DNA of 63,881 bases, filler included, from Pelomyxa schiedti (taxonomy: Eukaryota > Protista > Evosea): NCBI GenBank assembly GCA_020536535.1. It is 9 parts of 9 records of this genome, joined end to end, with 100 filler letters (N's around TTAATTAATTAA, not from the genome) between each part and the next. Parts side by side here need not be neighbours in the genome. Positions count along the whole stretch, not along the records: positions 51,967 to 57,981 come from JAHLWZ010001457.1; 8 more parts are not named here. The stretch is one strand, 5' to 3'. The position numbers and the translations under genes were made by a program. The first letter of the stretch is position 1; every line of letters begins with the position of its first letter. Below, in pieces: positions 51,967 through 57,981 of this stretch. The notes beneath the pieces are model-generated. The model did not search any database. It saw only the letters and a list, made by a program, of their open reading frames with translations, and was not told the origin of the DNA.

Positions 51967-51982
51967 CAGGGTGGCCTCTATT

Positions 51983-54604
51983 ATGGTTTCGGTGATGCCG
52001 CCGCCATCGGCATCGCGGTCGCGGCCTAGCCGACACCCGCCGCCATCTGCCTCGGCCTCCTCGGCCTCAGCGTCGCGTTCATTACGTGTGCCCTCACGCC
52101 CAACACAACCGCAGCAGCAAAACGTGCCTCACTTCCAACAGCCCATTGGAATCACTGGCACTAATACTAATACTGCTAGTAGACGCGCGAGGGTTGCTCC
52201 TACACCTGCAAATGCAAATTCGATTCCATTGCCACCACGACCACAACAATCTCGCAGAGTACAGCAACGTGTGGGTGTGGGCGCGGCTGTGGCCCCTCAG
52301 CCGCGTGCCGCGCCTCGCCCGCAACCTCAGCCAAAGATTCCGACGCCATCTGGCACTCTGGAGAACTTCCTGCAGCAACGCGAAGTGCTGGAGCCCAATG
52401 GACTTGCTGTGGAGGATTGGGTCATTGATTCGCGCGAGGAGATGGACTCGGTTTTTCCGTATAATGATGGGAAGGAGTGCAACCTGCCTTATAATACCGG
52501 TTCAAGAACACTCCCACAGGTGAATAGCTTATGTGAAAACTTGCATCAACAGTATACATAAACAGGTATTTGAGAATTACCAGAAGGCGAGACTATCCTT
52601 CTCCCAGGCGTTGGTGAACTTGGCGGAATGTAAAAAGAATACCGATGCCCTTCTCAAAAATGGTTCGAGACAATATATTTCCCCGAATTTCACGGCATGA
52701 AGGATCACTTATGTACCTTCGCGAATTACTATGCGACCAATCTCCAAGTGTTCAGCGTAATGCAGCACAGGTATCTTTTTGTGGCCCTTTTTTTCCTACT
52801 GAAAGAGTTAGGCTCTCGGAAAACTGGCAAATGCCAGTATTGATTCAGCACAACAAGTTGTGGATGCCGGGATTCAAGCCCATTTGGTGAATTGCCTATC
52901 CTCTCCAAATGTACAGCTCCATTTTATTGATTTCCCACTCCCCAGTTTCTCAGAAATTTGTTACGCGTGCTGCAGCATATGCCTTGGGGTCAGTGGCAAA
53001 GCACAGCGCACTCCTGGCACAGTACGTTGCGAATTCTGGTTCACCTGCACGCCTTTGCGAATGCCTTGTTTGTGCTGACACGCAGACTAACCAGTCTGCT
53101 GCCCATGCTATTGCATGTATTGCAAGGCACAACCCTGGTAAGTTAATCGGTACCATTAACATATTTTTTTACGGTCAATAGAACTATCTTGGAGTGTTGT
53201 AAACGCCGGCGCAGTGTCTCCTTTAGTTCTGTGTGTTGACAATGTCAACTTTTCCTTAAAACGGATTGCCCTTTCTGCCTTGGCCAATATTTCCAAGCAT
53301 AATGCGGATGTACTTTCTACTTTCTATCCATTACCGCTGAACGCTCTAGTTGGCAGGGAAAGTTGTTGATGCTGCTGCAGTCCCTTTTGCCGCTTCCCTT
53401 ATTTCCTGCGACGTATGTGCTCCTTTTTCTTCACACTAGAGCGAAAGTAAATGTTTCCCTCAGGACCCACAGCTCATCTGTCAAGCTGTTGTTTTTCTCA
53501 CTCAAATCGCTAAGCACACACAACCTTTCGCCGAAATCGTTGCCGATTTTATTTTATCTTCTGTTGTATATCTATTTTACCGAGAGGGGTCAGATTCAAC
53601 CACCAAAAGGTATACAGCATCTCTCCTGAAGGAGATCTCCAAGCACACCCCACAGGTATTATATTCCCCCGAAATGTCACGTTCTAATTGTGATTGTAGC
53701 TTGCCGCCCTCGTAGCAAAAGCAGGCGGGATTGCTGCTTTAATAGATTACTTAAAAAGCCTCACTCAAGGGATACTGATTCCCCTTGACGAGCCAGCGAT
53801 TTCCCCTGCTGTCGTAGCACTTGGGTTCATTGGATCCGGTAATGGACACTTAGCCTTGGAAATCATCAGCGAAGGTGCAAAGATATTGGAATTTGTTCTG
53901 GCTCACAGTACATCTGATTCATTGAAGGTAACTCTCCACAGAAAAATAGGCATGATTTAAACCAATTAATACAGGTGTGTTGTGTGTGGGCAATATGGCA
54001 CATTGCAAAGCACTCCCAAAAAACCGCAACAGCTGTTGCTGAGAGTACTAGTATAATGAAAACTCTTATCCGAACTCTGCAAGTAGTAGGCAAGAAAGAA
54101 CGACAACTACATTACCAATGATTTTCTTTTCCAAGACCACATCTCCGGAACTTAGGAAGAAATGCGAGAAGACTCTCGAATGTATTATACACACATGCGC
54201 CTCTTCCGCTTTATTCCCGCTTATCGATTCTCCTCCAGAAATCCTAGTAATAATTCATAATTCATCCCTCTAGTTCTTTATAACTTCTAGACAGGTGCAC
54301 GTTCTCCAAGCCTTTTCAGAAATTCTACCCAAAGACCTAAATGCCAGGAAACAATTTGTTGCAACCGGCTGCTTGACCAACATCCAGCGGCTTAGTACGG
54401 ACACCACCCAAATCCAAGTAAATGACACTATTTCCGGCAGATAGAACTAACTCATAACAGACCCTTGTATCATCCATAAATTCGTGTTACCCTCCTGATG
54501 TTGTTGGCTATTGTTGTCCGGATTTTCCAAAATCCGTGCCATTGGTTCCAGCTCCTATTGACATAAATGGTAACAAAACCACAACCTACAATTTTCCATT
54601 ATGA
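51983..54604 (+). CDS. SPAG6: SPAG6/PF16-like armadillo-repeat axonemal protein with a long N-terminal extension
   Basis: QVFENYQKARLSFSQ, ALGKLAN, RAAAYALGSVAKHSALLAQ, IARHNP, VNAGAVSPLVLC, LKRIALSALANISKH, LLKEISKHTPQ, ARKQFVATGCL and INSCYPPDVVGY are colinear with SPAG6. Confidence 0.85.
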
Positions 54605-54731
54605 CTTTTCCTCAGGCGGTACTCTGTAAGTAATGTACATAAAAAAAACCACAAAAATGTGTATTGTCATAAATCCACATTTAATACACCCTTCTTTCCA
54701 GAAGGTTGGTGTCTGTGTCTGTTTCACAACA

Positions 54732-57216
54732 TTACACTTTGTTCATTGCATGTTGATTGCCTTTGTGTGAATTCGTGGTCACTGTGATGCCAGGCTGTGC
54801 TGAATGTTGGTTTGCCTTGACCAACACAAACAGAGTGGCACCAGCAACACCAAAGACTGAGCCCATGAACCCACCAAACGATTCCAGTGTTCTGCCAGTT
54901 GCAAGGCTCACCCCAATTTTGTTGAACTGTCCAACCATACTGTGTGTTTTGGATGAGTGCAAAAAATTCACAATGGGGGCGAAACAAACCAAAGTGACGT
55001 GGGTGATGTCACCCGCAGAAGGAACACTGTGCACAGGCACAACAGGAATGATACCAAACAGTTAGACACAAAACATAGCCTTATCAGCGAGTCCCCATTT
55101 ATTGTGCTGAGAGTTTGTTAGTAAAAGGGTCATTCAGAATGTATATACCTTGTGACTGAGATGTTGAAGGATCCAAGACAAATGAGGATGACCGCCAGAA
55201 TGGCGGCAGACATGAGGTTGATCACCAACACACTGCTCAAAGGTGACGAAGGACTTCGGGAAATCACACGAGAGTATGAAAGCTTTACATTGATGAGTGT
55301 TTTGTGGGAGATGAGGGAGCGTACTGTGAAAAAGGAAGTGAACAACGCATTGGCGGAAATCCAAGCCAGGTTGTTGAAATCCCATGCAGGAGAGGGACTT
55401 CCCAGTGAGAAGAAGAAACAAGAGACAGTCTGCCATTCGGTGAGTTCAGTACGAAAAAAGTTCCGGAAACACACCATGACAAGGAAACTCACGGCAGTGC
55501 ACAGAGTCATTGGCCGGTTGAACACCAACCAATCACCCACTGCCGTCATCAATGAAGAGAATGACTTCCAGAGAAAAATTGTTGTGACCGGCAGGAATTT
55601 GAAACTAGTGAAACTGGGTGAGCCTCGCCAAAATTTTTGGTGAGTGGTTACCTCAAAAAACTTGTTCCAACCATCCCGACGAAGCTGAGACTGCAAGGAA
55701 TGCATTCCAGCAGGGTCCGCTTGTCAATTCGGAAATCCAGAGCCTTGCTCACAAAAAATATTGAAAGAAAGGCCACCGCAATCAGAACCTTCATAGATCG
55801 AGTGAGAAGACTGAATTAAGGGAAAAGCGAACACGAAAGAAAACCTGCGAAAACGCCAGGAAGAGGAAATACATTTCAGGCAACAGCTTTTGAAAGAGAG
55901 GGAGCAAAAAGAGTCGGTTGAATGTGCCCGCACCCAGTGACATCACAGCGTAGGAAGCAGACAAAAATATAACCCACCAAGGTGACCGCAACCATCTATG
56001 TTCTGCAGTTGGCGCAAGATTTGATCGTAGCACTGCCCGCTTCTTCCGCAGAGCGGTGGCAATGGCACATGCAATCAACACCGATCCTCCAAGTAAGCAA
56101 TATGTAGTCACCTTCCAGAGAGTTTCTGCAGATTCCATGTTGCACTTATACAAGTTGTTAAGTACGGACGAGAAATCACCCCAAGTCAGAGCGTAGTGGT
56201 GGATTCCAACTGGATTCTCATCACCAGTGTGAACTCCACACGCAGTCACTGGATTGAACATATCAATTGGAAATGTGCAATAAGCATTGGGATGTGCCAC
56301 TGCATGCCGCGCCACAAACTGTGGACCGAATGTATCAAGTACTTTGTCGCGGGACGTGTACGAATTCCTGTTTTTCCCCAAGCTGTTTGCAAAGTCCCCA
56401 ATCATTGCTCCAATAAAAGGACTTTTTGTTGCGGAATACATCAGGAAGTTGGAGATCGGTGTCGACTTGATCGCTCCGAATGATGGTGGGGGAACGTTGT
56501 GGCTGTCACTGTTGTTGTTGTTGTTGTTGTTGTTGGTCAACACCGGAAGGAAAGGATCCAAAGGCAAGAGCAACTCGTAATCCAAATCGGCGTACACACC
56601 ACCGTAAGCATACAACACCATCAGCCGGGCCGCGTCCGCGCGAATGACAGGTGTGTCAATTGAAAGGTACAAGGCGTACATGTCAGGGTAAACTCGGTGC
56701 ACCATCTCTTCCAGGCTTTCGCCGTCCCATAGCAAGTAAGTAAAGTCTGAAGGGCAAGTGAGAAAAAATGAAAGCGGAGGGAAACAAAGACTCACCAGGG
56801 TTGAGGCGCCTCCACGCCTGCGTGTATTCCAAGAATCTCGTGGGAATTTCCGGATCTGAAGCGGCCTTCTTGATGTTGATTTGATGGATGATCTTTGGCA
56901 CTACCCTGCCCTCGCTGCCTAAATTATTAACATCGCCATCGCGGCACCAGCAAGATACGTTCCCGCCATCGGCTGATGACATTCCCGTGTCCCATAACGG
57001 CTTCATTTTCTCTGCCAATTTCCTCCCCCACGAAACTTGTTCATCAAGCGCGTGTTGTGATTCCTTTGACAGAGCGAAACTGAGAGCATGGGGAACGAGG
57101 AACCCACTTGCCAATGATGGCAACTCCGAATCGGCACCAACGCTCCCTCTTGTTAATTGAAGGATGCACATTACCACAATGGCAAACTCCCACAATGGCA
57201 ACACCAACACTCTCAT
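54732..57216 (-). CDS. Fusion: GT32 (Och1/Sur1-like DXD glycosyltransferase) + TM + GDP-sugar nucleotide-sugar transporter
   Basis: Hydrophobic N-terminus, VPKIIHQ, W..LNPD, RADAARLMVLYAYGGVYADLD and HHYALTW. The same exon then carries a TM and SYAVMSLGAGTFNRL. Downstream spliced exons give LPVTTIFLWKS, WISANALFT and RVTSPTSL-SMVGQFNK. Confidence 0.82.
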
Positions 57217-57510: not shown

Positions 57511-57981
57511 TTAAGATAAGAAACACGAAAAGGGAGCTTCGAGGTTGTAACAGTCCCAGTCAGGAAAATTCAGTGTCAGGACAACAACGCCAGTGATTGG
57601 CTCGATGACTTTAATACCGGCGCTGTACCTCACAAACATGAGTCCTGACTCGGCAGCCACCAGAACGATTTCATTCTTGCTGGAGCAGTTGATCCGGTGC
57701 TTCATTTGCTGAGTGACGTCATCACGGTGGTACAGACCAAACATTCCCCCTTTGCAAAGTGACAGACAGAGCACAGAGTCTGACAAACGCATTACATCGT
57801 ATTTGGTGGCATCATTATCTGGGAAGAGAACGGGTGTGGCATTGCCCACTCCTTCGGCACCACTGAACATGTGGTATTTGTTTGAGCCCTTGATAATGAA
57901 AGTGCGTGACCCATAACCAGCAGAACACCGGTCCCAGTTCCTCATGACAAAATGAAGCTTCCACGATTGGCGCGTTGGCAA
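57511..57981 (-). CDS. 3' end of an uncharacterised beta-rich protein (5'-truncated)
   Basis: 156-aa open frame running to the contig edge with beta-strand-like composition; no family recognised. Confidence 0.45.
   Translation of the reverse strand: MPTRQSWKLHFVMRNWDRCSAGYGSRTFIIKGSNKYHMFSGAEGVGNATPVLFPDNDATKYDVMRLSDSVLCLSLCKGGMFGLYHRDDVTQQMKHRINCSSKNEIVLVAAESGLMFVRYSAGIKVIEPITGVVVLTLNFPDWDCYNLEAPFSCFLS

Follow-up and report, generated by a model that had tools for sequence, protein, structure and literature searches.

A single gene of the anaerobic amoeba Pelomyxa schiedti, lying on the minus strand of the window (the whole stretch of DNA analysed, 63,881 nucleotides including filler letters), runs from an ATG at 57216 to a stop codon at 54732 and encodes a protein of 717 amino acids in 8 exons (Table 1). 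An earlier reading made from the sequence alone (hereafter the sequence-only reading) had singled out positions 54732-57216, and this interval turned out to be exactly the CDS, from ATG to stop. The seven introns all have GT..AG borders and measure 42-56 nt, and six of them were verified by contigs of single-cell RNA. In the RNA runs at hand, neither intron 1 nor the first 1.27 kb of the mRNA at its 5' end has support: the contigs span the 3' 1.3 kb only (54648-55951), and none lies over the GT32 part or over the junction between the two halves of the protein. Their depth is low (3-8) and contigs cannot show absence. The RNA-guided model of 717 residues is identical to the NCBI protein KAH3731436.1 (P0001), which is entered as 'glycosyl transferase [Pelomyxa schiedti]'. 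Genomic contigs from two runs showed zero differences from the window sequence across the junction (55941-56194). Spliced along the RNA joints, the transporter motif reads TSPTSLCMVGQFNK; the sequence-only reading had taken later exons to supply TSPTSL-SMVGQFNK, but the details of its splicing were partly wrong, the RNA-based motif having a C and not an S. A bacterial or symbiont origin of the gene was rejected because of its seven spliceosomal GT..AG introns and its poly(A) tail.

Table 1. Positions in the window of the fused gene, its exons and introns, and the features of the encoded protein
Feature	Position	Strand	Remark
CDS of the fused gene	54732..57216	-	8 exons, stop included; RNA-joint model
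Exons 1-4	57216-56796, 56746-55845, 55788-55652, 55604-55475	-	
Exons 5-8	55429-55325, 55282-55149, 55106-54990, 54939-54732	-	
Intron 1	56795-56747	-	
Six RNA-verified introns	55844-55789, 55651-55605, 55474-55430, 55324-55283, 55148-55107, 54989-54940	-	single-cell RNA contigs
3' UTR, poly(A) addition site at ~54648	54648..54731	-	RNA contig end and loose T run on + strand
N-terminal hydrophobic segment, aa 3-21; signal peptide or type-II anchor	57154..57210	-	Kyte-Doolittle peak 2.33
GT32 catalytic domain, aa 95-350	56118..56934	-	spans intron 1
DXD motif, D194-L-D196 in YGGVYADLDYE	56580..56588	-	direct sequence reading
Poly-Asn insertion, N212-N219, loop after DXD	56511..56534	-	GTT repeat on + strand
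HH..W motif of GT32 core	56201-56196	-	
Extra transmembrane helix TM0, aa 355-373	56049..56105	-	hydropathy peak 1.91
Basic linker, aa 374-396, presumed cytosolic	55980..56048	-	starts RKKR (56048-56037)
NST-like polytopic transporter domain, aa 397-690	54816..55979 (introns included)	-	exons 2-8
LVIN, aa 584-587, counterpart of Vrg4 FYNN	55217..55228	-	Vrg4 alignment
GQFNK, aa 652-656, counterpart of Vrg4 GALNK	54918..54932	-	Vrg4 alignment

The GT32 half and the junction

The N-terminal half was confirmed as an Och1-like GT32 glycosyltransferase with a GT-A fold and a DXD motif. PF04488 (Gly_transf_sug) matched residues 125-207 with E=5.2e-14 and 53.2 bits, against a Pfam cut-off of 23, and the best match of this half in the PDB by sequence was Och1 (9n3s, E=1.1e-8). 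The AF2 model reached a pLDDT of 90.3 and a pTM of 0.88; Foldseek again placed Och1 9n3s first (E=1.2e-9, TMq 0.66), and after it came retaining GT-A glycosyltransferases of the toxin type. The assignment to GT32 made in the sequence-only reading is thus borne out by PF04488 and by Och1 as best match in both sequence and structure. Both aspartates of the DXD motif are invariant across a 49-sequence GT32 alignment. The poly-Asn loop that follows has low pLDDT in the model, is shorter in the paralog P0151 and is absent from P0002; one genomic run's contig has 21 gap letters within 56365-56657, the region of this insertion. With the hydrophobic segment at the N-terminus, the GT domain would lie on the luminal side. 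Since the GT32 family also takes in UDP-Gal and UDP-GlcNAc enzymes and its donors are not uniform, the donor is not readable from family membership; a retaining transfer of mannose from GDP-mannose, as in the Och1/Sur1 subgroup, is suggested only by Och1, the nearest relative of solved structure. Och1 and other GT32 enzymes (the MIPC synthases Sur1/Csh1, Hoc1) have PF04488, the DXD and HH..W motifs and the GT-A fold in common with the Pelomyxa protein, which like them is predicted to face the lumen, after a hydrophobic segment at the N-terminus. However, identity to Och1 amounts to only ~16-19% in the structural alignment, and the Pelomyxa enzyme carries a polytopic transporter domain at its C-terminal end.

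The 902 nt of exon 2 are free of stop codons and hold the core of the GT32 domain from DXD to HH..W, TM0, the RKKR of the linker and the first two transporter helices. The reading-frame fusion is therefore independent of splicing, as the sequence-only reading had argued from a single uninterrupted exon. All four paralogs have TM0 at this position; the linker begins with RKKR here and with RKNH, RRRS or RRRN in the others, and a spacer of only ~23 codons separates TM0 from TM1 of the NST domain. An in-frame methionine, M344, stands shortly before TM0. To join a domain in the lumen to an NST whose N-terminus is cytosolic, exactly one transmembrane helix is needed; one is present and basic residues come after it, so that the topology is self-consistent. 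This agrees with what had been proposed from the sequence, namely a luminal GT, one helix, a basic linker and an NST with a cytosolic N-terminus as in Vrg4. The chain would accordingly cross the membrane in the order N-terminal signal or anchor, luminal stem, GT32 domain, TM0, basic cytosolic linker and NST domain, and we infer this to be the membrane topology of the fusion protein.

A divergent NST-like transporter half

When the transporter half was compared with the PDB by phmmer, Vrg4 (5oge, E=5.1e-7) and 9s35 (E=1.3e-4) were the sole matches at E<=10. A profile built from the four paralogs found the same two (9s35, E=1.4e-8; 5oge, E=1.5e-7) and no others at E<=10, and the E-values for the GDP-mannose transporters were better with this family profile than with the single sequence. 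The PDB contains two GDP-mannose transporter sequences, 5oge and 9s35; other NST/DMT structures are also deposited there. The alignment with 5oge is full-length and colinear (residues 17-319 of the transporter half versus 13-334 of Vrg4), and colinearity over all the helices of Vrg4 is consistent with a ten-helix layout. Hydropathy gave clear peaks, with some helices merged, and AF2, run on an alignment of the four paralogs only, placed 10-11 helices after TM0 but with a pLDDT of 36. The half thus resembles GDP-mannose transporters of the Vrg4/GONST1 type (SLC35-like, DMT; 5oge, 9s35) in its colinear sequence and in its similar length, a multi-helix membrane domain of ~300 residues, but differs from them in being covalently placed behind a luminal enzyme and one extra transmembrane helix.

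The Pfam NST profiles TPT (PF03151), Nuc_sug_transp (PF04142) and UAA (PF08449) gave no match at E<=1, either with the full protein or with residues 380-717, and EamA (PF00892) alone scored in the transporter half, reaching 15.7-16 bits (E=0.015-0.019) where the cut-off is 28.2. Single NST exons yielded no match in Pfam or the PDB, the pieces being too short and one of them containing retained introns. Language-model features lay at 0.97-0.98 to eukaryotic DMT/NST clusters, and the neighbours belonged to UDP-, CMP- and GDP-sugar families with none preferred. At the level of sequence comparison, the C-terminal half was confirmed as a divergent NST-like transporter by its likeness to the solved GDP-mannose transporters and not by the Pfam NST profiles. 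Word-indexed protein searches and the metagenome scan showed no relatives of the transporter half outside Pelomyxa schiedti. With this half alone the word-indexed search returned no match and the four-paralog profile none at E<=10; the whole-protein word-indexed search, restricted to the transporter region, returned Pelomyxa proteins only, and no standalone close relative appeared in the word-indexed searches. Word seeding evidently fails on a divergent hydrophobic domain, so that these blank results say little.

In Vrg4, FYNN with N221 serves in guanine recognition and GALNK with K289 in sugar/phosphate recognition (PMC6789118). Residues Y28, K118, N221, N288 and K289 of Vrg4 are conserved in the Pelomyxa protein and invariant in all four paralogs, and the RVTS.T..MVG..NK block, which includes the RVTS.T stretch, is common to both transporters. 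At the place of GALNK, just downstream of the RNA-verified exon junction 54990|54939, this protein has GQFNK and its paralogs have GEFNK or GEVNK; G285, N288 and K289 of Vrg4 recur in these motifs, A286 and L287 do not. FYNN is replaced by LVIN here and in P0151 and by FIVN in both P0002 copies, with only the N221 equivalent kept, Y281 is replaced by L (L or V across the paralogs) and S266 by C. These substitutions, together with scores below every Pfam NST threshold, set the transporter half apart from Vrg4, and the degenerate FYNN and the changes of Y281 and S266 make a guanine/GDP specificity doubtful. The identification of this half as an NST, already proposed from the sequence, is upheld by the direct match to solved GDP-mannose transporters although all Pfam NST profiles stay below threshold. 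Its assignment to a GDP-sugar is favoured by the best-characterised relatives of the two halves, Och1 and Vrg4, but is weaker than had been claimed, since FYNN, GALNK, Y281 and S266 are changed.

Paralogs and the search for other fusions

At least four copies of the fused gene, this one and three more, are present in the Pelomyxa schiedti genome. P0151 and both tandem copies in P0002 consist of GT32, TM0, basic linker and NST, and in each of them a single exon carries the junction. The two paralog pairs are ~48-56% identical to each other; none of the four copies has lost its open frame, its catalytic motifs or its splice sites. In the comparison with P0151, identity is 72-98% in the exons (85-98% in exons 2-8) and 44-72% in the introns. 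The GT32 domain has a dN/dS of 0.17, the NST half one of 0.32 and the linker one of 0.63. Purifying selection acts on both halves, and the architecture is maintained by selection. The NCBI model P0002 merges two tandem fused genes, PF04488 matching it twice, and the model P0151 carries a spurious N-terminal extension.

No GT-NST fusion was seen elsewhere among the best 150 GT32 relatives listed from a search of 1.84 billion proteins, and a metagenome profile scan gave 225 pattern matches, of which none was confirmed. A protein-atlas search with the full protein returned only weak (0.82) look-alikes, which were long fungal 'UDP-galactose transporter' clusters, none with PF04488. In the literature, no description of a natural GT-NST fusion was found, and the Pelomyxa schiedti genome paper makes no mention of glycosyltransferases or nucleotide sugars. 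The sequence-only reading knew of no described example, and these literature and database searches turned up none. The domain architecture is real and new; it joins two known kinds of domain and is confined so far to one lineage, a single anaerobic amoeba. It may perhaps be the first natural example of a Golgi/ER NST covalently fused to the luminal glycosyltransferase that it feeds, a claim that we put forward tentatively.

Proposed function and alternatives

We consider it probable, with some reserve, that the gene encodes a single-chain fusion of a luminal Och1-like GT32 enzyme and an NST-like transporter that likely imports its donor. The transporter half would bring a nucleotide sugar into the lumen of the Golgi or ER in exchange for a nucleoside monophosphate; this nucleotide sugar would probably be a GDP-hexose, for instance GDP-mannose. 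The tethered GT32 domain would transfer the imported sugar to a luminal acceptor. The enzyme would always adjoin its own donor supply, and one may speculate that this would extend to substrate channelling.

The fusion could also be real with a transporter half whose substrate is not a GDP-sugar (instead a UDP-sugar or a different DMT substrate), or which only anchors or oligomerises the GT32 domain, transport having been lost. We regard this as unlikely, but it deserves serious weight: the positions that read guanosine in Vrg4 hold LVIN/FIVN for FYNN, L/V for Y281 and C for S266, all Pfam NST families score below threshold, the language-model neighbours have no UDP/CMP/GDP preference, and GT32 is generally known to contain UDP-Gal and UDP-GlcNAc enzymes. 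Set against these points are the PDB matches, which are GDP-mannose transporters only, and the invariance in all four paralogs of the phosphate-binding lysines K118 and K289 together with Y28, N221 and N288, while the dN/dS of 0.32 favours a constrained function beyond mere hydrophobicity.

That annotation or assembly has joined a membrane-anchored GT32 gene to an adjacent, separate NST gene, or that the NST is made mainly from an internal promoter, seems very improbable. M344, in frame shortly before TM0, could provide an internal start, but an NST begun there would have an eleventh helix and an inverted N-terminus, and the ~23-codon spacer between TM0 and TM1, itself with dN/dS <1, is too short to house a terminator and a promoter. 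The RNA contigs do lie on the NST part only (54648-55951); however, 3'-only coverage fits their low depth (3-8). Although NCBI models of the same genome suffer from merging errors (P0002 merged, P0151 extended), the junction sequence is identical in two genomic runs, and the GT32 frame is stop-free up to the NST in all four paralogs despite the ~48-56% identity between pairs. It is hardly credible, finally, that recent duplication has left lineage-specific genes that are now decaying and devoid of present function. The family does come in multiple copies from one species only and has a poly-Asn microsatellite within the GT domain, but the preserved frames, catalytic motifs and splice sites in four of four copies, the dN/dS well below 1 in both domains and a gene that is spliced and polyadenylated in single-cell RNA all speak against decay.

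The favoured reading, a luminal transferase tethered to its likely donor transporter, can be placed beside known systems. Membrane-embedded GT2 processive synthases (cellulose, chitin, hyaluronan) are likewise single chains in which a glycosyltransferase domain is joined to a polytopic membrane part that carries a sugar-containing molecule across the bilayer. These synthases catalyse in the cytosol and export their product, whereas the Pelomyxa protein would import its donor and act in the lumen; the two belong to unrelated folds and families. The same logic is seen in the non-covalent Golgi NST-glycosyltransferase assemblies, for example SLC35A3 with MGATs (PMC6453868), in which a donor transporter adjoins the transferase that uses the donor. 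These consist of separate associating polypeptides, whereas in the single Pelomyxa chain both proximity and a stoichiometry of 1:1 would be set by the gene itself.

Whether a Golgi glycosyltransferase draws on a common pool of donor in the lumen or on an adjoining transporter is an open question in glycobiology, on which the evidence so far comes from non-covalent NST-GT complexes (e.g. PMC6453868). A natural transporter-transferase fusion in four paralogs under purifying selection offers an independent argument for an advantage of proximity. If the favoured reading is true, the protein would be a 'Rosetta-stone' protein, indicating that NST-GT pairing can be selected for, and a one-chain model for direct donor hand-over to the active site (channelling) versus release into the luminal pool; the fusion protein also provides structural and kinetic work with a construct of defined 1:1 composition. 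The present annotation leaves a gap in this respect, the NCBI entries naming the enzyme half only: all three are called just 'glycosyl transferase', and their precomputed Pfam matches consist of PF04488 only.

Gene model and the exon shared by both halves

The sequence-only reading had correctly bracketed a single minus-strand gene, and its modelled product (P0001) is, residue for residue, NCBI KAH3731436.1, 'glycosyl transferase [Pelomyxa schiedti]', from a 6015-bp contig; the transporter half is missing from this public annotation. Exon 2 is a single uninterrupted reading frame that encodes the GT32 core from DXD (D194-L-D196) through HH323-324..W, then the helix at aa 355-373, which is strongly hydrophobic, RKKR (aa 374-377) with about 20 more linker residues, and transporter helices 1 and 2. 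Since one open frame crosses both halves, the earlier claim that the fusion is independent of splicing was borne out. Two genomic runs showed zero differences from the window over 55941-56194, which makes a frameshift from sequencing error improbable.

Contigs of four public runs were aligned to the region, two genomic and two single-cell RNA-seq (same study). Both genomic runs contained the introns and agreed with the window. Contigs of one RNA run gave six splice joints, all CT..AC on the plus strand, i.e. GT..AG on the gene strand, one of the six deriving from a contig's loose end, which maps again 45 nt farther along. The low-depth RNA contigs, which cannot show absence, end in a poly(A) tail and reach 55951 only, with the GT32 part and the junction outside their coverage. 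Introns 4 and 5 have lengths that are multiples of three and contain no in-frame stop; both are spliced out in the RNA, and their retention would preserve the frame and add 15 or 14 residues to the transporter domain. P. schiedti is a free-living anaerobic archamoeba whose genome was obtained by single-cell sequencing, and the seven introns of the fusion gene fit the reported genome-wide density of 7.4 introns per gene (PMC8887013).

Features of the fusion gene and its surroundings, in window positions
Feature	Position	Strand	Detail
Gene model	57216 (ATG) to 54732 (stop)	-	8 exons, 717 aa; intron 1 from model, other introns RNA-supported
Intron 1	56795-56747	-	predicted; not among RNA-verified introns
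Exon 2	56746-55845	-	
Intron 2	55844-55789	-	RNA contigs
Intron 3	55651-55605	-	RNA contigs
Intron 4	55474-55430	-	RNA contigs; 45 nt
Intron 5	55324-55283	-	RNA contigs; 42 nt
Intron 6	55148-55107	-	RNA contigs
Intron 7	54989-54940	-	RNA contigs
Poly(A) tail	54648		RNA end
(GTT)n microsatellite	56511-56534		eight Asn in GT32-domain loop
Convergent neighbour	51967-54620	+	multi-exon armadillo-repeat gene
Neighbour exon	52909-53137	+	matches SPAG6/PF16
ORF	57511-57981	-	156 aa, open at piece edge

Identity of the two halves

Sequence and structure prediction both assign the N-terminal half to GT32. It scored 53 bits for PF04488 in Pfam (cut-off 23), its top PDB sequence match was Och1, the initiation-specific alpha-1,6-mannosyltransferase (9n3s, E=1.1e-8), and both DXD aspartates were invariant throughout the GT32 alignment. 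The AlphaFold model of this half, built from 49 homologues, was confident (pLDDT 90.3); its closest structural neighbour was Och1 (E=1.2e-9, TMq 0.66), followed by toxin-type retaining GT-A glycosyltransferases. The Asn run encoded by the microsatellite is shorter in P0151 and absent from P0002, both paralogous entries from the same genome. A contig of one public genomic run (X2) has 21 gap letters over 56365-56657, probably at this repeat (7 codons), and 56496-56545 were skipped as repeat in the read comparison.

Single transporter exons gave no match in Pfam or PDB, the spliced half gave only a sub-threshold EamA match in Pfam (DMT clan, E=0.015), and word-indexed protein searches found no standalone relatives of this half. 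When it was compared by HMMER with all PDB sequences, exactly two proteins matched, both GDP-mannose transporters: Vrg4 (5oge, E=5.1e-7), aligned over essentially full length, and 9s35 (E=1.3e-4). A four-paralog profile improved these values to 1.5e-7 and 1.4e-8, respectively, with no further PDB matches. Language-model features placed the half among eukaryotic DMT/NST clusters (0.97-0.98); AlphaFold gave no reliable fold for it (pLDDT 36). These matches identify the C-terminal half as a divergent member of the nucleotide-sugar transporter (NST) superfamily; the closest relatives of this half that have been characterised transport GDP-mannose.

With functional roles of Vrg4 residues taken from PMC6789118, the half keeps Y28 (Y406 here), K118 (K500), N221 (N587), R274-V-T-S-x-T (R641-V-T-S-P-T) and G285, N288 and K289 (G652, N655 and K656; GALNK reads GQFNK), whereas Y281 is changed to L, S266 to C, and only the last N of FYNN (218-221) is kept (LVIN here, FIVN in two paralogs). 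Because the residues that read guanine in Vrg4 have not been kept, no substrate can be named confidently, and the GDP specificity assigned earlier was overstated. GDP-mannose or another GDP-hexose is our best guess for the donor, and only a guess, favoured because the best relatives of both halves (Och1, Vrg4) are GDP-mannose proteins.

Paralogs, selection and predicted topology

Among 1.84 billion representative proteins searched by HMMER, two matched exon 2 at E<1e-30, P0001 and P0002. P0002 (KAH3744351.1, 1279 aa) comprises two tandem GT32-TM-linker-NST copies, and tblastn on its locus showed that the annotation (L001 3001-8385) fuses two complete tandem genes: the true last exon of copy 1 (MMGEVNK; about L001 5215-5364) is in the DNA and skipped by the deposited model, and an N-terminal exon of copy 2 (about L001 5936-6286) is in the DNA and used only in part. 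A fourth copy, P0151 (KAH3756155.1; 84% DNA identity), is annotated at 899 aa including a spurious N-terminal extension, its first ~230 aa coming from an upstream ORF of low complexity with many R, G, A and P residues (L002 92-1400). Translation of P0151 probably begins at the ATG at L002:1401 instead, giving a signal-peptide-like N-terminus that matches the one of the window gene. Between these two genes, 7/7 intron positions and GT..AG ends are conserved, identity is 44-72% in introns and 72-98% in exons (85-98% in exons 2-8), and dN/dS is 0.17 for GT32, 0.32 for the transporter and 0.63 for the linker with TM0, the extra helix between the halves. This pattern would be expected of two functional domains on a tolerant tether. 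Window 57861-57981, the right end of the 6-kb contig that carries the fusion gene, is 100% identical to L002 1-121, the start of P0151's 91.5-kb contig. The match resembles an assembly-graph overlap; were the two contigs joined, the two GT32-NST genes would form an inverted duplication, head-to-head and ~2 kb from each other.

We infer the membrane topology as follows. NSTs of the Vrg4 type have both termini in the cytosol, and the N-terminal hydrophobic segment would place the GT32 domain in the lumen, like other GT32 enzymes; this combination requires exactly one extra membrane pass. One extra helix was found between the halves with basic residues on its far side, a charge placement that agrees with the prediction of the positive-inside rule, and in 4/4 copies the transporter is preceded by one helix and then by a basic cluster (RKKR, RKNH, RRRS, RRRN). 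The architecture and topology first proposed were largely right. In the simplest putative mechanism, the C-terminal half would bring nucleotide sugar in from the cytosol in exchange for nucleoside monophosphate from the lumen, and the tethered enzyme would transfer the imported donor's sugar to a luminal acceptor; direct donor hand-over (channelling) is speculative.

Rarity and neighbouring sequence

About 50 of the 150 nearest GT32 relatives are at least 430 aa long, and among these 150, beyond which lie ~1,870 weaker GT32 matches, a polytopic region or a match to the transporter half was found in P0001 and P0002 only. No large Atlas cluster near the fusion protein had both domain types, and a metagenome scan was blank. 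The papers searched described NST and GT in non-covalent assemblies (e.g. PMC6453868) and no natural GT-NST fusion; the genome paper (PMC8887013) does not mention glycosyltransferases or nucleotide sugars. It is supported that the fusion was not previously described, and not proven that it is absent elsewhere; it combines two well-known families in a new domain arrangement, lineage-specific so far. The nearest whole-protein Atlas look-alikes (0.82) were clusters of fungal 'UDP-galactose transporter' proteins (PF04142) that are long, about 790-900 aa, and may represent a different type of NST fusion.

The 156-aa ORF beside the gene had no Pfam or PDB match. Pelomyxa flagella are reported to be non-motile and aberrant. 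The exon of the convergent neighbour matches a ciliary central-pair protein (PDB 9ijj, E=7e-19; Chlamydomonas PF16, 7n6g, E=2.6e-17), and the retention of such a protein despite reportedly non-motile flagella may merit a look.
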